Positions 20,004 through 64,000 of a stretch of DNA of 64,000 nucleotides are shown piece after piece; the first letter of the stretch is position 1, and the number at the start of each line of letters is the position of its first letter. This stretch comes from Scyliorhinus canicula (taxonomy: Eukaryota). The notes under the pieces were generated by a model, which had not been told where the DNA came from, searched no databases, and was given only the letters and a program-made list of their open reading frames with translations. Location: the NCBI RefSeq assembly GCF_902713615.1, contig NC_052157.1, forward strand, positions 154,169,004-154,233,003. The letters are read 5' to 3'. Made by a program: the position numbers and the translations under genes.

Positions 20004-22924
20004 GAGGGAGAGACTGGTGGGGGAGCTGCTGAGTGTAGATAGGAGGTATGCGGAGGCCCTGGAGGAGGGATTGTTGGGGGAGCGGCGTAGCCTGCAGGCC
20101 AAGTTTGATTTACTGACCACCAGAAAGGCGGAGACACAGTGGAGGAAGGCGCAGGGAGCGGTCTACGAATATGGAGAGAAGGCGAGCAGGATGCTGGCGC
20201 ATCAGCTCCGCAAGCGGGATGCGGCTAGGGAGATTGGTGGAGTGAAGGATAGGGGTGGGAATGTGGTGCGGAAGGGGGTAGAGGTCAATGGGGTCTTCAG
20301 GGACTTCTACAGGGAACGCCGATCAAGTTGGAGGAGCTGGTTAGAGGGATTGGCCACATGCAGTTGGGGAAGGCGCCGGGGCCGGATGGGTTCCCGGTTG
20401 AATTTTATAAAAAATATGCGGACCTGTTGGGCCCCCTGCTGGTTCGGACCTTTAACGAGGCATTGGAGGGGGGAGTTTTGCCCCCGACGATGTCACAGGC
20501 GCTGATTTCCCTGATCCTGAAGCGAGATAAGGACCCCCTTGCAGTGTGGATCATATAGGCCAATTTCACCGTTGAACGTGTACGTCAAGTTGCTGACGAA
20601 GATCTTGGCCACTAGAGTAGAGGACTGTGTGCCGGGGGTGATACATGAAGATCAGACGGGTTTTGTGAAGGGGAGGCAGCTGAACACTAACGTGCGAAGG
20701 CTGCTAAATGTGATAATGATGCCGGCGGCAGAAGGAGAGGCGGAAATTGTGGTGGCGTTGGATGCGGAGAAGGCCTTTGATAGGGTTGAGTGGGGGTACT
20801 TGTGGGAGGTGTTAGAGAGGTTCGAGTTTGGGGAGGGGTTTATTAAATGGGTGAGGTTGCTGTACGAGGCCCCGATGGCGAGTGTAGCGACAAATGGGAG
20901 GAGCTCCGAGTACTTCAGGCTCCACCGTGGGACGAGGCAGGGGTGCCCCCTGTCCCCCTTGCTTTTTGCATTGGCAATTGAGCCTCTGGCCATGGCGCCA
21001 AGGGAGTCGGGGAGGTGGAGGGGTCTGGTGCGGGGTGGGGAGGAGCACCGAGTGTCACTTTATGCAGATGACTTGTTGCTGTATGTAGCAGACGCGGTGG
21101 GGGGAATGCCGGAGGTGATGGAGATTCTTGCTGAGTTTGGGAGTTTCTCGGGCTACAAGTTAAACCTGGGCAAGAGCAAGCTGTTTGTTGTACATCCGGG
21201 AGATCAGGAGGAGGAGATTGATAGGCTCCCGCTAAAAAGGGCAGTGAGGAGTTTTAGGTACCTGGGGGTTCAGGTGGCTAGGAGTTGGGGGACTTTGCAT
21301 AAGCTTAATATTACTAGGTTGGTGGAGCAGATGGAGGAGGAGTTTAAAAGGTGGGACATGCTGCCGCTGTCGTTGGCGGGTAGAGTACAGTCCGTTAAAA
21401 TGACGGTGCTCCCGAGGTTTTTGTTTTTGTTCCAGTGCCTCCCCATTTTTATTCCGAGGGCCTTTTTTAGGAGGGTGAACAGCAGCATCACGGGATTTAT
21501 TTGGGCGCACGGGACTCCGAGGGTGAGGAGGGCCTTTTTGGAGCGGGGCTGGAGTTGCCCAACCTCTCTGGGTACTATTGGGCGGCTAATGTCTCGATGG
21601 TACGCAAGTGGGCAATGGATGGGGAGGGGCAGCATGGAAACGGATGGAGATGGCGTCCTGTGGAGGCACGAGCCTGAAGGCACTGGTAACGGCGCCGTTG
21701 CCGCTCCCTCCAACGAGGTACACCACGAGCCCGGTGGTGACGGCTACCCTCAAGATTTGGGGGCAGTGGAGGCGACACAGGGGGGAAGTGGGGTCTCGGT
21801 GGAGGCCCTGCTGCGGGGGAACCACCGGTTTGTCCCAGGGAACATTGATAGCGGGTTCCTGGGGTGGCACAGGGCGGGCATAAGGAAGTTGGGAGACCTG
21901 TTCATTGCCGGGAGGTTTGCGAGCCTGGGTGAGCTGGAGGAGAAGTTTGAGCTCCCCCCGGGGAATATGTTCAGGTACCTTCAGGTCAAGGCGTTTGCTA
22001 GGCGGCAGGTGGAGGGGTTCCCTTTTCTGCCCCCGCGGGGGGTAAGGGATAGGGTGCTTTCGGCGGTGTGGGTCGGGGATGGGAAGGTGTCTGACATCTA
22101 CCAGGTGATGCAGGAGGTGGAGGAGGCGTCGGTAGAGGAGCTGAAGGCTAAGTGGGAAGTGGAGCTGGGGAAGCAGATTGAGGAGGGGACATGGGCGAAC
22201 GCCCTGGAGAGAGTAAACTCCTCCTCTTCATGTGCGAGGCTTAGCCTCATCCAGTTCAAGGTACTGCACAGGGCTCATATGTCCGGGACAAGGATGAGCA
22301 GGTTTTGTGGGAGTGAGGACAGGTGCATTAAGTGTTCGGGAAGCCCAGCGAACCATGCCCATATATTTTGGGCATGCCCGGCACTGGGGGAATTCTGGCA
22401 GGGGGTGGCGAGGACGGTGTTGAGGGTGGTAGGGTCCAGGGTCAAGCCAGGCTGGAGACTCGCGATATTTGGGGTTGGGGTGGAGTCGGGAGTGCAGGAG
22501 GCAAAAGAGGCTGGTGTTTTGGCCTTTGCGTCCCTAGTAGCCCGGCGGAGGATCTTGTTGCAATGGAAAGATGCGAGACCCCCAAGCGTGGAGACCTGGA
22601 TCAATGACATGGCGGGATTCATTAAGCTGGAAAAGGTCAAATTCGCCCCGAGGGGGTCAGTACAAGGGTTCTTTAGGCGGTGGCAGCCTTTCCTCGACTT
22701 TCTGGCGCAACGATAGGGAACTAGGTCAGCAGCAGCAGCAACCCGGGGGGGGGAATTGTTTATGTTAATTTAATTTATTTTAAATTTATTTTGTTGTTCA
22801 TCGGGTTTTGGGGGGGGGGGGGGGGGTTCGTTATATGCGTTGTTACGGGTTCGGGGGTGTTTATTGTTATTATTATTATTGTTCTGTTGTTATACATTTT
22901 CAATAAAAATCATTTTTAAAAAAA
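20004..22924 (+). mobile_element. 5'-truncated L1-clade LINE (2.9 kb; RT to 3' end)
   Basis: RT motifs LDAEKAFDRV, GTRQGCPLSP, LYADD; 15-bp TSD acattagaggaaggg at 19989-20003 and 22925-22939. Confidence 0.97.
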
Positions 22925-30095: not shown

Positions 30096-30595
30096 GGGTT
30101 GGGGGGTCGGTTGTAATACTTTATTGCTGGTTTCTGCTGTTGCAGTGTCCTTTTTTTGTTTCTGTACTTTTGCAATTTTGATATGGTTATTTATGGGGGT
30201 GTTGTTCTGTTTTTTTTTGCTGTGGGGCATTGTTTGAGTTTTGTATCTTGCGGGGAGGGTTGGGGGGGTTTGTTGTATTCTATGTCGGGTTGGGGGTATG
30301 GAGTGGGGCTGGTATTTGGGAGCTGCGTCAGAAGGTGAGAAAGCGCGGGCTTTCCTCTGGTTTCCGCGCTGCGGGGCTGGGGGGTGGAGACGATGACGGG
30401 GAGAGGCGGGGCCCTAACTGGTTCTTCCCCGCGCTGGAGCGGTGCCTGGAGGGATAGGATGGGGATGATCCCACTTTGGGAGGGGCCGGGTTATTGGCGG
30501 GAGTTTCCGGGGTCAGCAGAAGTTAGCTGACCCACGGAAGTACAATGGAAGACGGTTCGCGGCTAGGAGGGTTCCTAGCCCTGGGGGGGGGGGGG

Positions 30596-30599
<4 letters not shown>

Positions 30600-30676
<77 letters not shown>

Positions 30677-30713
30677 AGAGAGAGCGCGAGAGAGAGCGCG
30701 AGAGAGAGCGAGA
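30600..30713 (+). repeat. (GA)n microsatellite grading into (GAGAGAGCGC)n, preceded by a poly-G run
   Basis: Directly visible in the L1 inter-ORF spacer. Confidence 0.95.
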
Positions 30714-30846
30714 GGGGAATGCCGGGTTGCTGCTGGCAGGGTCAGGAAGGAGCTGGTGGGGGCCAGGTGGACAGAGGTGAGGTGTTGTCGCTGTGGGGAC
30801 TGGGGTGGGCGGGGGGTGCTGGCCTGGGGCGGGCAGTCGACGGGCT

Positions 30847-33800
30847 ATGGCTAGTCGACGGGGGAGGGGGGGCGGGATGCCCTCTGATCCGGTTGGTTAC
30901 CTGGAATGCGAGAGGATTGAATGGGCCGGTGAAACGGTCGAGGGTACTTGCTCATCTGAGGGGGCTAAAGGCAGATGTGGCAATGCTTCAGGAGACCCAC
31001 CTGAAGGTGGCGGACCAGGTCAGTCTGAGGAAGGGGTGGGTGGGGCAGGTTTTCCACTCTGGGTTGGATGTGAAGAACCGTGGAGTGGCGATTTTGGTGG
31101 GGACAAATGTGTCGTTTGAGGCATCGGAGGTGGTGGCGGATAAGGGGGGTAGGTATGTTATGGTTAGGGGCAGGCTACAAGGAGAGAAGGTGATACTTGC
31201 TAGTGTGTATGCCCCAAATTGGGACGATGCGGGCTTTATGAGGCGTATGTTGGGACGGGTCCCGGATCTAGAGGCGGGAGGTCTGATCATGGGGGGGGAC
31301 TTCAATACAGTGTTGGATCCTTCACTGGATCGGTCCAGCTCTAGGACGGGTAGGAGACCGGCGGCGGCCAAGGTACTGAGAGGGTCTATGGACCAGATGG
31401 GTGGAGTGGATCCATGGAGGTTTGTGAGGCCGAGGGCACGGGAGTGCTCATTCTTCTCCCACGTACATAGGGTCTACTCGCGGATAGACTTTTTCGTGGT
31501 GAGTAGGGGACTGATTCCGAGCGTGGAGGAGGCCGAGTATTCGGCCATTGCAATCTCCGACCACGCTCCGCATTGGATAGAGTTGGAGATGGGGGAGGTG
31601 CGGGACCAGCGCCCGTTGTGGCGGTTGGATGTGGGGTTGTTGGCGGAGGAGGAGGTGTGTAGGAGGGTCCGGGCAAGTATTGAGGGGTACAATCGAGGTG
31701 AATGATACGGGGGAGGTTCAGGTGGGGGTGGTCTGGGAAGCCCTGAAGGCAGTGATTCGTGGGGAGCTGATATCCATCCGGGCACACAGGGAGAGGAGCG
31801 AGAGGGATAGACTGGTGGGAAAGATGCTGGAGGTAGACAGGAGATACGCAGAGGCACCAGAGGAGGGACTGTTGGTGGAGAGGCGCAGCCTGTGGGCTAC
31901 TGATTTGATTTGCTGACCACTAGAAAGGTGGAGGCACAGTGGAGGAAGGCACAAGGGGCAGTGTACGAACATGGTGAAAAGGCGAGTAGGATGCTGGCTC
32001 ATCAGCTCCGCAAGCGGGATGCGGCTAAGGAAATTGCTGGAGTGAGAGACAAGAGTGGGAATGTGGTGCGGAAGGGGGTAGAGGTGAATGAGGTCTTCAA
32101 GGACTTTTACGGGGAACTGTACCGGTCGGAGCCAACGGGGGAGAGGAGGGGAAGGAAGAGGTTCCTCGACGGGCTTTCTTTCCCGAAGGTGCAGGAGGAG
32201 CAGGTGGAGGGGTTGGGTGCGCCGATTGAGCTGGAGGAGCTAGTTAAGGGGATCGGGCAGATGCAGTCAGGGAAGGCACCGGGGCCGGATGGGTTCCCGG
32301 TGGAATTTTATAAAAAGTTTGTGGACCTAGTGGGCCCCTTGCTGGTGCGGACACTTAATGAAGCGTGGGAAGGGGGGACTTTACCTCCGACAATGTCGCG
32401 GGCGCTGATCTCGTTAATCTTAAAGAGGGGCAAGGACCCCCAGCAGTATGGTTCATACAGGCCCATATCTCTCCTCAACGTAGATGCCACGGTGCTGGCA
32501 AAAATCCTGGCCACCAGGATAGAGGACTGTGTGCCAGGGGTTGTACACGAGGACCAGACAGGGTTTGTGAAGGGAAGGCAGCTGAACACGAATGTGCGGA
32601 GATTGTTGAATGTCATCATGATGCCGGCGATTGAGGGGGAGGCAGAGATAGTGGTGGCGCTGGATGCAGAGAAGGCCTTCGATAGAGTGAAGTGGGGGTA
32701 CGTATGGGAGGTGTTGGGGAGGTTTGGATTTGGTGAAGGGTTTATTAGATGGGTGAGGCTGCTATATGAGGCCCCGATGGCGTGCGTGGCAACGAATGGG
32801 AGGAGGTCGGAGCACTTGCGGCTTTACCGAGGGACCAGGCAGGGTTGCCCCCTGTCCTTGTTGTTTGCATTGGCAATCGAGCAGCTGGCAATGGCGTTGA
32901 GGGATTCAGAGAGGTGGAGAGGTTTGGTGCGAGGTGGGGAGGAACATAGGGTGTCGTTGTATGCCGATGACCTGTTACTGTATGTGGCGGACCCGGTGGG
33001 AGGGATGCCGGGGTGATGGAGCTGCTAGCTGAGTTTGGGACCTTTTCAGGTTATAAACTAAATTTAGGCAAGAGTGAGGTGTTTGTGGTGCACCCTGGAG
33101 ACCAGGAGGAAGGAATTGGTAGGCTCCCGCTTAGGCGGGCAGGGGAGAGTTTTAGGTACCTGGGGGTGCAGGTGGCCAGGGACTGGGGGACTCTTCACGA
33201 ACATAATTTCACCAGGCTTGTAGATCAGATGGAGGAGGAGTTCAAGAGGTGGGACATGCTGCCATTGTCGTTGGCGGGGAGGGTGCAGTCCGTCAAAATG
33301 ACGGTGCTTCCGAGGTTCTTGGTCCTCTTTCAGTGCCTGCCCATCTTCACCCCCAGGGCCTTCTTTAGGAGAGTGACTAGCAGTATCTTGAGCTTTGTGT
33401 GGGCACATGGGACTCCGAGAGTGAAGAGGGTTTTCCTGGAACGAGGGAGGGATAGAGGCGGGCTGGCGCTGCCCAACCTTTTGGGGTACTATTGGGCGGC
33501 CAATGTGTCAATGGTGCGTAAATGGGTGACGGAGGGGGGAGGGCGGCATGGAAAAGAATGGAGATGGCGTCATGTAGCGGTACGAGCCTGGGTGCCATGG
33601 TAACGGCGCCGTTGCCACCCTCCCCTAAGAGGTATACCACGAGCCCGGTGGTGGCGGTGACCCTAAGAATCTGGGGACAGTGGAGACGGCATAGGGGGGA
33701 AACGGGGGGCTCGATGGAGGCTCCATTGGGTGGCAATCATCGGTTCATCCCGGGGAACAAGGATAGGGGATTTAGGGGGTGGCAAAGGGTGGGCATCAGT

Positions 33801-34632
33801 AAATTGAGGGACCTGTTTATTGGCGGGAGGTTTGCGGGCCTGGGGGAACTGGAAGATAAATTTGGGCTTCCCAAGGGAACATGTTCAGATACTTGCAGGT
33901 AAAGGCGTTTGCTAGGCAACAGGTAGAGGGATTCCCTTTGCTGCCCTCGCGGGGGACGATGGACAGAGTGCTTTCGGGGGTGTGGGTCGGAGAGGGGAAG
34001 GTGTCTGACATCTATAAGGTAATGCAGGAGGTGGAGGAGTCGTCAGTGGAGGAGTTGAAGGCTAAATGGGAGGGGGAACTTGGGGAGCAGATAGAGGACG
34101 GGACTTGGGCGGATGCCTTGGAGAGAGTCAACTCTTCCTCTTCATGTGCGAGGCTTAGTCTCATCCAATTTAAGATGCTGCACCGGGCCCACATGTCTGG
34201 GACTAGGATGAGTAGGTTCTTTGGGGGTGAGGACAGGTGCACCAGATGTTCAGGGAGTCCAGCGAATCATGCCCATATGTTCTGGGCATGCCCAGCATTG
34301 GAAGAATTCTGGAAGGGGGTGGCGGGGACGGTGTCGAGGGTGGTTGGATCCCGGGTCAAACCAGGGTGGGGACTCGCGATTTTCGGAGTTGCGGTGGAGC
34401 CGGGAGTGCAGGAGGTGAAAGAGGCCGGCGTCCTGGCCTTTGCGTCCCTAGTAGCCCGGCGGAGGATCTTGCTGCAGTGGAAGGATGCGATGCCCCCCCA
34501 AGTGTGGAGACCTGGGTCAATGACATGGCGGGATTTATAAAGTTGGAAAGGGTCAAATTTGCCCTGAGAGGATCAGAACAAGGGTTCTATAAACGGTGGC
34601 AGCCTTTTCTGGACTTCCTGGCTCAAAGATAG
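30847..34632 (+). pseudogene. L1 ORF2 (endonuclease, reverse transcriptase, C-terminal Cys domain) with several frameshifts
   Basis: TWNARGL, MLQETHL, GGDFN, SRIDFF, SDH (APE); KAPGPDG, LDAEKAFD, YADD (RT); split over ORFs starting at 30545, 31629, 31910, 33013, 33522, 33881 and 34237. Confidence 0.93.
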
Positions 34633-43653: not shown

Positions 43654-43690
43654 TTTGCAGATAATCTGCCAGGTCACCTCCATTGCAGTA
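43654..43690 (-). CDS. ULK2: ULK2 coding exon (37 nt; YCNGGDLADYLQ)
   Basis: catag|TAC TGC AAT GGA GGT GAC CTG GCA GAT TAT CTG CAA A|gtaagt; kinase hinge motif of ULK1/2. Confidence 0.96.
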
Positions 43691-49477: not shown

Positions 49478-49656
49478 TACAGTAAATTGTGTGTTATCAG
49501 ACACTTTACCAATTGGAATTCCATACTGACTGGAATTTCTGATGTTCCCCTAACCAGAATAGTCAGCAATTACCGGGAAACCCATATACTTGCTTTTTTA
49601 ATGTATTGTTGAAGAGTGAATTTTTTTAAAATTGCTCTTCTACACTTCGAATACTT

Positions 49657-50524
49657 TGTAGCCACCTGGGGTGGCCACTTCCCGATTCCAAAATGGAGAC
49701 CCGCAAAGAATACAGGGAAAATTAGCCAGGCACAGAAAACAAGCAGGTGCAAGGTTTCCTGTGTATTAAGATTTGGAAAACCCAGACAGAACCGAAACCA
49801 GTAGCCATCTACATATTAATGAGCAATCCCCAGGAACAATTAGATACATTGAAGTGATCGGGACCAAACCGGACTCCCCGGCGCCAGCGGGAGCCAGGTC
49901 AAAGGAAGGCCAACAGACACATAGGAACCGCCCAGCGATCAGCTCCAGTATTGGAGAAATCGATCGGAACGATTGGAACTTGGTCCAATTAATTGGGGCC
50001 AGGTCCGGGGACCGCCCAAAAGGGCGCGAAACCCCTGGGGGACTATAAAATAGAGTCCCCAAGATCAGCTTGTCCTTCTTGGCAGGTTCTCTTAGCAGCT
50101 TGAAAGAACTCTTGACCGTGACTCTCAACAAGGAGAGGCCTGCCTAGCAGCTGCACCAACCAAGTAAGTTTCCAGTCAACGCACGCTACGAGATAGGCGC
50201 TCCTAGCTACTATTCCATGCCAGCTTGAAACCTGCAGCCTCAGAACCGAACAAAGGCCATTGTTCCTCTGACCTGGTGGGCACTTCCAAAAGCTAAGTAT
50301 AGGCCTTTAGTGTTAGTAATAGTCTAGTAAGTATAGTTTTATGCATGAGTAGTGATTGACTGTGTATAATAAATGTGTTTTGGTTTGAAACTTACTAACT
50401 GGTGTATTGAGTTATTGATCAGCACTTGACCTTGAACCTCGTGGTGGTATCAGAAAGATACCTGGCGACTCTAGAGCAAAGGTTATTAAAACAGAGCAAT
50501 TAAGTAAAAGCACAATTAGCAACA
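49657..50524 (+). mobile_element. Solo LTR, 868 bp, with perfect 4-bp TSD
   Basis: TGTAGC...GCAACA termini; TSD actt at 49653-49656 and 50525-50528; TATAAAA at 50044; AATAAA at 50368. Confidence 0.88.
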
Positions 50525-50715
50525 ACTTCCATATTAATTCATATGACAATTATTGTTGTGTATTCCACTGGCAAATGAAAGTCTCTATTAACAGGCATTT
50601 TTGATTAACCAACACCACCCATTCCCCTTGCGTGCCAGAAAAAGATTTTACAGTATTAAGGCCATGAGGGGGAGACTATTTCACCACTATTCAGTCCTGA
50701 ACCCCTCAGACTGAA

Positions 50716-51709
50716 GAACTATACTCTGCAATCATCAAGGTGTCATCTTCATTATACTCGGCAATCATCAGGGTGTCATCTTCACTACACTCTGCAATCA
50801 TCAGGGTGTCATCTTCACTACACTCTGCAATCATCAGGGTGTCATCTTCACTACACTCTGCAATCATCAGGGTGTCATCTTCACTACACTCTGCAATCAT
50901 CAGGGTGTCATCTTCACTACACTCTGCAATCATCAGGGTGTCATCTTCACTACACTCTGCAATCATCAGGGTGTCATCTTCACTACACTCTGCAATCATC
51001 AGGGTGTCATCTTCACTACACTCTGCAATCATCAGGGTGTCATCTTCACTACACTCTGCAATCATCAGGGTGTCATCTTCACTACACTCTGCAATCATCA
51101 GGGTGTCATCTTCACTACACTCTGCAATCATCAGGGTGCCATCTTCACTACACTCTGCAATCATCAGGATGCCATCTTCACTACACTCTGCAATCATCAG
51201 GGTGTCATCTTCACTATACTCTGCAATCATCAGGGTGTCATCTTCACTACACTCTGCAATCATCAGGGTGTCATCTTCACTACACTCTGCAATCATCAGG
51301 GTGTCATCTTCACTACACTCTGCAATCATCAGGGTGTCATCTTCACTACACTCTGCAATCATCAGGGTGTCATCTTCACTACACTCTGCAATCATCAGGG
51401 TGTCATCTTCACTACACTCTGCAATCATCAGGGTGTCATCTTCACTACACTCTGCAATCATCAGGGTGTCATCTTCACTACACTCTGCAATCATCAGGGT
51501 GTCATCTTCACTACACTCTGCAATCATCAGGGTGTCATCTTCACTACACTCTGCAATCATCAGGGTGCCATCTTCACTACACTCTGCAATCACCAGGATG
51601 CCATCTTCACTACACTCTGCAATCATCAGGATGCCATCTTGACTGTGCTCTGCAATCATTAGGGTGTCATCTTCACTATGCTCTGCAATCATTAGGGTGT
51701 CATCTTCAC
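50716..51709. repeat. 33-bp minisatellite, about 30 copies
   Basis: Unit ctctgcaatcatcagggtgtcatcttcactaca; explains the repetitive 328-aa and 300-aa ORFs. Confidence 0.97.
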
Positions 51710-51961
51710 AAGGTTTTCATGTGCGACAATTTCATAACATTTAATCAATGGTTCTTTGGAAATAATTTCTCAGATTAACAAATTTTCAATGTCGCACAAC
51801 AAACTTTAGAACAATGTCATCCAAATATTCCCGGGGCTTGCTGCTTTTCCTTCAGTTCTATTGGTGAATATTTTTCCTCTCCCCAAAAACACCAATAGTA
51901 CACTTCCAAAGATGCCAACTCCCTTCTATCTCACACAACCGACCACTCAATGAGAGAGTTT

Positions 51962-52255
51962 AGTAAGAGGTCTTACTACACCAGGTTAAAGTCCAACAGG
52001 TTTGCTTGGAATCACTAGCTTTCGGAGCGTAGCTCCTTCATCAGGTGAGATAATATAATTGTCCTATGAATTAATATGGAAGTACTCTGGAAGTGAAGAG
52101 CATTTTTTAAAATTTCCATCTTTCAGCAATACATTAAAAAATCAAGTATACGGGTTCTGGGTAATTGGTGCCGATTCTGGTTTGGACTTTAACCTGGTGT
52201 TGTAAGACTTCTTACTGTGCCCATCCCAGTCCAAAGTCAGCATCTCCACATCATG
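51962..52255. mobile_element. Penelope-like element remnant with inverted terminal-repeat pieces
   Basis: 35-bp inverted repeat (33/35) at 51962-51996 and 52182-52216; contains a hammerhead motif. Confidence 0.7.
52012..52048 (-). ncRNA. Minimal type I hammerhead ribozyme motif
   Basis: Minus strand UCAC-CUGAUGA-A-GGAGC uac GCUCC-GAAA-GC-UA-GUGA: complete core, 5-bp stem II, 4-bp stem I, palindromic stem III. Confidence 0.8.
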
Positions 52256-52439
52256 AGAGCTTTGACAGACTACGGACAAAATATTCCAATTGGGGCAAAT
52301 AATAAGTGAAACTCCACACCGAGCACAGATCACAGCTGGCTTTATTGTTTTATAACCTTGGAATACAAGAATTTATTTTCATTGCATTCCACACTCAACG
52401 GAGGTCCCCTAGATTCTTGCACACTGTTCAGAAACAAAA

Positions 52440-52860
52440 GACTTGCTTTTGATGACCAGTGCCAGAATGTCTCAAAGTGCTTTATGACTAACAAGGTACT
52501 TTTGAAGTGTAGTCATTAAAGTGAAGTAGGGAAAGAGCAGCAAATTTGCACACAGCAAGCTCCCACAAGTAGCAGTGCGAATCACAAAACCTGTTTTTTG
52601 TGATGGTGGAGGGATAAATATTGGCAAGGATATGCGGGATATCTCCCCTTACTCTTCTTTGATGAGTGCCATGGATCTTTTCCTGACAGACCAGATGGAT
52701 GCCTTGGTCTAATTAATCCTTAAAAAACCCATCAACAGCACAGCATTCTTTCAGTGCTTCATTGGCATGCCACAGCCTTGATTTTTGTGCTCAGGTACTG
52801 GACTGAGATTTGAACCTGGAACAAAATGACTCAGTGCTAAAAATTGAATCACGCTGGCAA
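52440..52860 (-). mobile_element. Deu-domain-type SINE, degenerate
   Basis: tttgaagtgtagtca..gagggataaatattggc..agtgccatggatcttt is the inverse of the 12810-13397 element. Confidence 0.7.
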
Positions 52861-63532: not shown

Positions 63533-64000
63533 GTGGCACAGTAGCACAGCGGTTAGCAACATTGCTTCACAGCTCCAGGGTCCCAGGTTAGATTCCCGGC
63601 TTGGGTCACTGTCTGTGCGGAGTCTGCACATTCTTCCCATGACTGCGTGGGTTTCCTCTGCGTGCTCCGGTTTCCTCCCACAGTCCAAAGATGTGCAAAT
63701 TAGGTGAATTGGCCATGATAAATTGCCCTAGTGTCCACAAAAAAAGGATAAGTGGGGTTACTGGGTTACAAGGATAAGAGTGGAGGTGTGGACTTAAGTA
63801 AGGTGCTCTTTCAGGGCGTGAGCACAATGGCACAGTGCATTGCTGCCTATGGCGCTGAGGACCTGGGTTCAAATCCCAGCTCTGGGTCACTGTCTGTGTG
63901 GAATTTGCACGTTCGCCCAGTGTCTTCAACCCAAAGATGTGCAGGATAGTTGGATTCGCCACGCTAAATTGCCCCTTAATTGGAAAAAATAATTGGGTAC
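63533..64000 (+). mobile_element. V-SINE type A (63533-63817) followed or interrupted by a V-SINE type B (63820 to window end)
   Basis: Two heads in tandem; the second ends ggaaaaaataattgggtac at the window edge. Confidence 0.85.

Follow-up and report, generated by a model that had tools for sequence, protein, structure and literature searches.

The hammerhead motif and its ULK2 intron

The window analysed here, the whole stretch of 64,000 nucleotides, carries ULK-type kinase exons on its minus strand at approximately positions 43690, 41841, 37428 and 36453. For the exon at 41916-41761, the best PDB match is ULK2 (6qat, E 2.5e-23) versus ULK1 at E 3.3e-20, and no exon further upstream can be recognised up to position 64000. 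The plus strand of the ULK2 gene region also harbors LINE-type ORFs (20539-22716, 30545-33016, 374-1291 and 33881-34540), with matches to reverse transcriptase and AP endonuclease and weak, sub-cutoff matches to zf-RVT.

Within a ULK2 intron longer than 20 kb, approximately 8.3 kb upstream of the next exon and in the same transcript, the minus strand at 52048-52012 contains a hammerhead motif. The motif reads UCAC-CUGAUGA-A-GGAGC/uac/GCUCC-GAAA-GC-UA↓GUGA as RNA, the arrow marking the predicted cut (DNA: TCAC CTGATGA A GGAGC TAC GCTCC GAAA GC TA GTGA). Its parts, all read from the sequence, and the exon that follows it are:

52012-52048, minus strand: minimal type-I hammerhead motif (sequence, with a descriptor match at 52044)
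52048-52045 / 52015-52012, minus strand: helix I
52044-52038, minus strand: core CUGAUGA
52037, minus strand: extra A
52036-52032 / 52028-52024, minus strand: helix II, with loop UAC
52023-52020, minus strand: GAAA
52020-52017, minus strand: palindrome AGCU
52016, minus strand: A17, with the predicted cut between 52016 and 52015
43655-43690, minus strand: next downstream ULK2 exon (...YCNGGDLADYLQ), after a polypyrimidine tract and AG

The invariant core of the motif is complete (C3 U4 G5 A6 U7 G8 A9, G12 A13 A14, A15.1/U16.1 and an A at H17). Helix II consists of five Watson-Crick pairs, including the G10.1-C11.1 pair formed by G 52036 with C 52024, and is closed by the loop UAC, whereas helix I comprises four pairs (UCAC/GUGA) and is open, which makes the motif type I. 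Helix III is a palindrome, A-G-C-U, that has no loop and cannot close within one molecule, and an extra unpaired A (52037) stands between A9 and G10.1, directly after CUGAUGA. These observations bear out the description given in an earlier reading of this DNA made from its letters alone (the sequence-only reading), which had proposed a minus-strand hammerhead with all conserved core bases, sense to ULK2 in a long intron, with perfectly paired stems I and II, a stem III reduced to a palindrome and a cleavage position near 52015-52016. The same reading had set the motif inside a 35-bp inverted repeat. The repeat is real, with 35-nt arms at 51962-51996 and 52182-52216 that share 94% identity, but these arms flank the motif without containing it, the left one at a distance of 15 nt.

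A hammerhead descriptor search over both strands of the 64-kb window matched solely at 52044 on the minus strand, and no second hammerhead was found in the window, on either strand, for the C3-G8 core or the U3-A8 variant. On Markov-2 random sequence, the same descriptor yields approximately one match per 20 Mb (both strands), or about 0.003 per window. A few hundred chance matches are thus expected in a shark-sized genome, so that chance needed to be excluded by other means. The Rfam search that the sequence-only reading had put forward as a check returned no hammerhead model, either across the whole window at gathering score or at E<=10 on stretches of 701 nt and 81 nt. The hammerhead of a control contig linked to Penelope-like elements (PLEs; contig L002, described below) was likewise missed, and the Rfam negative therefore says little for this class of hammerhead. 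The sole Rfam overlap with the motif is a group-II-D1D4-5 hairpin at 52020-52041 on the minus strand (14.6 bits, E 1.3), which covers helix II and flanking core bases, a weak match that we took as a coincidence. Viral contigs searched with the hammerhead and with the repeat arm gave no match.

A very high-copy repeat family and a head-to-head insertion

To positions 51750-52650 we aligned, at 80% likeness, two raw RNA runs and one RNA-like contig set from the same species, together with contigs of a related species (organism B). The pile-up in this alignment covers 51962-52049 and 52182-52255 and nothing else. The contigs of organism B reach a summed depth of 0.5-1.46 million on both blocks, versus approximately 9-15 on the unique flanks (about 10^5-fold), a quantity that is not equivalent to copy number but shows a very abundant repeat. 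The RNA runs have a depth of 0 on the unique flanks; the repeat blocks are matched by thousands of RNA reads derived from other copies. Similarly, words of the element are common to the RNA-like runs of many studies and to organisms B and C. Many unrelated contigs align exactly to 51962-52049, and their sequences disagree beyond both edges (agreement 0.37-0.45), indicating that 51962 and 52049 are real unit boundaries. Other copies extend 5' of 52182 with ...GCTCCGAAAGCTAGTGATTCGAAACAAACCTG (agreement ~0.7), from which it follows that other members carry the same 3' half of the hammerhead. The motif is a built-in hammerhead of a very high-copy repeat family, and neither a lone nor an exapted ribozyme.

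The family presents two alternative 3' ends approximately 38 nt apart, one at 51962 (52216-52218 in the right copy) and the other at 52253-52255; the loose ends beyond each of them agree poorly. Many copies in organism B end at 52218 with unrelated flanks, and across all runs many end at 52253-52255. On the 5' side, the edge of helix I (52048/52049), 33 nt short of the predicted cleavage site, is where many copies of the family stop, and a subset continues upstream of 52049 with shared sequence (loose-end consensus, agreement ~0.4). A 5' boundary at the helix I edge suggests that the RNA used as template apparently does not owe its 5' end to the hammerhead's own cut.

At the ULK2 locus, two copies of this repeat are arranged head to head, with their 3' ends outward against the flanks. 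The components of the composite are:

51950-51961, no strand: probable target-site duplication, left half, ATGAGAGAGTTT (flank comparison)
51962-52049, minus strand: left copy, an 88-nt short-form unit bounded by the helix I 5' edge (52049/52048) and the first of the family's 3' ends (contig pile-up)
52050-52181, no strand: filler of 132 nt between the two copies, at single-copy depth
52182-52255, plus strand: right copy, 5'-truncated and without hammerhead, with a tail of ~38 nt (52217-52255) that is absent from the left copy (pile-up and inverted-repeat arms)
52253-52264, no strand: probable target-site duplication, right half, ATGAGAGCTTTG, the first 2-4 bases of which may be the element's end (flank comparison)

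The sequence ATGAGAG(AG/C)TTT is found on both flanks. This flank repeat is imperfect and may overlap the last bases of the element, and it is probably a target-site duplication of ~11-12 bp that brackets the whole composite. From approximately 52054 onwards, the filler duplicates, in inverted and diverged form, 49547-49660 plus 50520-50553, which lie 1.5-2.5 kb upstream, and it resembles local sequence taken up during the joining of two cDNA ends. A short microhomology (TTGG / TTAGG) is present where the filler joins the truncated right copy. The upstream paralog of the filler is itself split by an insert of ~865 bp (49661-50524), to which a TATA-like box and an AATAAA signal give the look of a solo LTR and which is apparently absent from the organism B contig.

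With respect to the family majority, the left copy differs in at least 5 of its 88 positions (51969, 51977, 52005, 52008 and 52030), and only 52030, in loop 2, falls within the motif. At ~6% divergence, an intact motif would survive in approximately 14-40% of copies even in the absence of selection, and the intact core is hence no argument for function.

The contigs of organism B also bear on the age of the insertion. One of them starts inside the tail of the right copy and runs into the right flank, and another ends just before the left copy; flank divergence between the two species is ~4-6%. Because an organism B contig runs from within the right-copy tail into the right flank, the insertion is probably older than the separation of the two species. 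In one organism B contig, 51750-51941 and 52055-52182 seemed to be matched in opposite orientations. An inversion in organism B was rejected as the cause, since the inverted paralog upstream accounts for the opposite orientations through its similarity to the filler. The neighboring sequence also holds a 33-bp tandem array at 50718-51709 (30 copies, 97% identity), which yields spurious ORFs of at least 300 aa on both strands. The spacing across the array region is 239 nt in the organism B contig versus 1196 nt here, suggesting approximately one array unit in the related species and a recent expansion of the array here.

Comparison with Penelope-like elements

The minimal hammerhead ribozymes (min-HHRs) of metazoan PLEs (Cervera & de la Pena 2014, PMC4209133) are type I motifs with four hallmarks: an additional unpaired base separating A9 from G10.1; pairing of G10.1 with C11.1; a 15.2-16.2 palindrome that leaves helix III without a loop; and a helix I of 4-5 bp in which no loop 1 is defined. 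They are present as thousands of mostly solitary copies per genome and include opposite-strand pairs 100-700 bp apart. Their place is the terminal repeat of elements that encode a telomerase-like reverse transcriptase and a GIY-YIG endonuclease. All four hallmarks are found in the shark motif (A 52037; G 52036-C 52024; AGCU; 4-bp helix I), which also resembles PLE min-HHRs in belonging to a multi-copy family, in its solitary hammerhead and in its opposite-strand pairing. Unlike the described PLE min-HHRs, in which helix II has 6-8 bp, the shark motif has a helix II of 5 bp.

The same hammerhead, differing only in loop 2, is also present in three marine metagenome contigs, probably from a chordate host. 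In two of these, L002 and L003, a GIY-YIG-like ORF precedes it by ~750 nt on the same strand:

L002, same strand: ORF at 90-581, hammerhead at 1334-1360 (metagenome contig scan)
L003, same strand: ORF at 281-1036, hammerhead at 1789-1815 (follow-up contig)
L001: hammerhead at 970-996, without a GIY-YIG-like ORF (metagenome contig scan)

The ORF of L002 and L003 ends ...CKTCPVL...VIYLIRCKHGCDNAWYIGETSQPLHIRLNGH..., and its pattern VIYLIRC..C...WYIGET corresponds by eye to GIY...YIG. ESM Atlas places the contig ORF with chordate GIY-YIG clusters at 0.97. Searches of the ORF in Pfam, NCBIfam and a large protein search gave no family name and no Pfam GIY-YIG match, and its PDB matches to designed 'Ika' proteins look spurious. 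In L001, a reverse transcriptase fragment below the Pfam cutoff is located on the strand opposite to the hammerhead. The contigs carrying both the hammerhead and the GIY-YIG-like ORF are probably Penelope-like elements, and this connection lends the shark family the support of a lead, not of proof. A weak similarity between the shark unit and L003 downstream of the hammerhead (CCAAAGTC...CCACATCA, near the 3' end of the unit; p ~0.02 by shuffling) may likewise be treated as a lead only.

No PLE ORF is present in the window, the ORFs of which are LINE-type only, and no autonomous PLE (reverse transcriptase plus GIY-YIG) with the exact shark unit was seen in the sequences examined. The assignment to PLEs consequently rests on the motif hallmarks, the tail signature and the foreign contigs. 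The tail signature can be read against PAc, a Poseidon PLE of Anolis carolinensis (Frangieh et al. [quoted passage not shown] The ~38-nt gap between the two family 3' ends in the shark matches this optional tail. As in the shark family, the PAc hammerhead is located near the 5' side of the template RNA segment, and no RNA-seq ends map to the ribozyme site. PAc differs from the shark family in being a full coding element in tandem arrays, whereas the shark units measure 88 or ~126 nt and have no ORF. The protein of the Anolis element cuts and extends both target strands (PMC11167929), and such action on both strands predicts the head-to-head layout seen at the ULK2 locus. Our literature search found no report of shark hammerhead repeats. 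Together, the four hallmarks, the very high-copy family and the GIY-YIG-linked contigs support the attribution to Penelope-like minimal type-I hammerheads made in the sequence-only reading, and we infer a PLE origin for the shark family.

The reading that we favor, with a probability of roughly 0.85, is that the motif is the minimal hammerhead of a PLE-derived, gene-less mini-repeat, left by a double insertion and persisting as a passive fossil. The mini-repeat, a unit of 88 nt, or ~126 nt with the optional tail, is present in very many copies in the shark and in a related species. A single insertion event probably generated two cDNA copies, primed from both sides of the cut target; the outward 3' ends of the copies, which abut the flanks, would correspond to the reverse-transcription start sites, and the 5' ends face each other. 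The two copies would then have been joined via the 132-nt filler, copied from nearby DNA, and the resulting composite would be bracketed by the target-site duplication of ~11-12 bp. The left copy, complete, retains its hammerhead; the right copy, truncated at its 5' end, has none. The sense orientation of the hammerhead to ULK2 would simply reflect that about half of intronic copies are expected in that orientation.

Expected activity and alternative explanations

In a local fold of 77 nt, helix I has a pair probability of 0.68-0.80 and helix II of 0.98-1.0, whereas in a 336-nt context fold the 35-nt arms make a long stem and helix I is displaced. A helix III formed in trans by AGCU/AGCU would comprise 4 bp at ~-2.5 kcal/mol before initiation. 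Published single min-HHRs did not cleave in vitro, and dimers cleaved weakly (PMC4209133). The hammerhead of the Anolis PLE cleaves only with the element's protein, and no RNA-seq reads begin or end at its ribozyme site (PMC11167929). Likewise, the two raw RNA runs present, at the family level, no pile of read starts or ends between 52016 and 52015. These runs are oligo-dT libraries, in which 5'-OH ends are poorly captured; with zero RNA depth on unique intron sequence, their end data describe the family and not the ULK2 copy, and their read directions, equal both ways, are uninformative. The motif stands alone as a monomer, its helix III has no loop, its helix I is limited to 4 bp and it makes no loop-loop contacts; little or no activity is therefore expected of it in the pre-mRNA. 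The sequence-only reading had envisaged a potentially self-cleaving RNA that could influence co-transcriptional processing of ULK2, a proposal left unsupported by a lone monomer of a kind that was inactive in published work and by the lack of a family-level end pile-up.

Several alternatives to a passive fossil can be weighed against these results. The ribozyme might be occasionally active and cut a fraction of the ULK2 pre-mRNA, via trans AGCU pairing or a PLE protein, with little or no selected function. In favor of this are the intact core in sense orientation to the gene, a local fold that admits helices I and II, the abundance of family RNA among the RNA runs and the protein-assisted cleavage of the Anolis hammerhead (PMC11167929). 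Against it stand a trans helix III of just 4 bp (~-2.5 kcal/mol before initiation), the dominance of the 35-nt arms and displacement of helix I in the 336-nt context, the family-level result at the cut site and the poor cleavage of dimers in vitro (PMC4209133), which make occasional activity unlikely. It is conceivable that, when an autonomous PLE is expressed, its protein could help minimal hammerheads cleave host pre-mRNAs, that of the ULK2 copy included, although we consider this a very long shot. Should such conditional cutting be true, thousands of sense intronic copies would couple transposon activity to host gene output.

Non-LTR retrozymes and the satellite hammerheads of newt, Schistosoma and cricket work as dimers and have a short palindromic helix III. 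The shark family shares with them a type I motif, the short palindromic helix III and a non-autonomous repeat, and a short gene-less unit with a type-I hammerhead could in principle belong to this kind of repeat, spreading via small circular RNAs, instead of deriving from a truncated PLE. Retrozymes related to PLE pLTRs have been reported in a chondrichthyan, and the retrozyme and PLE-derived categories overlap (bioRxiv 10.64898/2026.07.22.740005). In contrast to retrozymes and satellite hammerheads, which are characterized by tandem arrays, loop-loop contacts and circular RNA, the shark copy is solitary, head-to-head and stripped down: the copies at the ULK2 locus are inverted, with no tandem arrangement and one hammerhead in the window, the canonical loop 1/loop 2 contacts are missing, and the units are bounded by the helix I edge and two 3' ends, whereas circle-derived units are bounded by the cleavage site. 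A retrozyme-type origin is, on this evidence, quite improbable. The sense orientation in a long intron and an insertion that appears older than the organism B split would also be compatible with an exapted, conserved ribozyme regulating ULK2 processing, comparable to amniote HH9 and HH10 (Rfam RF02275, RF02277), which are likewise sense-strand hammerheads in introns of protein-coding genes. HH9 and HH10, however, are single-copy and deeply conserved, with stable helices and tertiary contacts, whereas the shark motif is one among very many equivalent repeat copies, has neither a stable helix III nor tertiary loops and lacks an Rfam hammerhead match. These features, together with a divergence from the family majority that looks neutral, make exaptation highly improbable. 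The least credible explanation is a chance match to a short degenerate pattern, for which the permissive descriptor (~200 random matches when extrapolated to a 4-Gb genome) and the Rfam result might be invoked. It was rejected on the grounds that the motif is a built-in part of a repeat family, with reads and contigs piling up on its copy, that other copies share its sequence (loose-end consensus ...GCTCCGAAAGCTAGTGA...) and that an identical hammerhead recurs in unrelated contigs.

If the motif is, as we favor, the passive fossil of a PLE-derived mini-repeat, the single locus matters little, as a decaying copy of a retroelement type already known to carry ribozymes and not a ULK2 regulatory ribozyme. 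The family may merit a proper description, as a gene-less unit of 88 or 126 nt that extends from the hammerhead edge to two reverse-transcription start sites, apparently at very high copy number in sharks and often inserted head to head, a layout that is in keeping, in vivo, with what the Anolis element does in vitro, namely two-strand priming and internal initiation.
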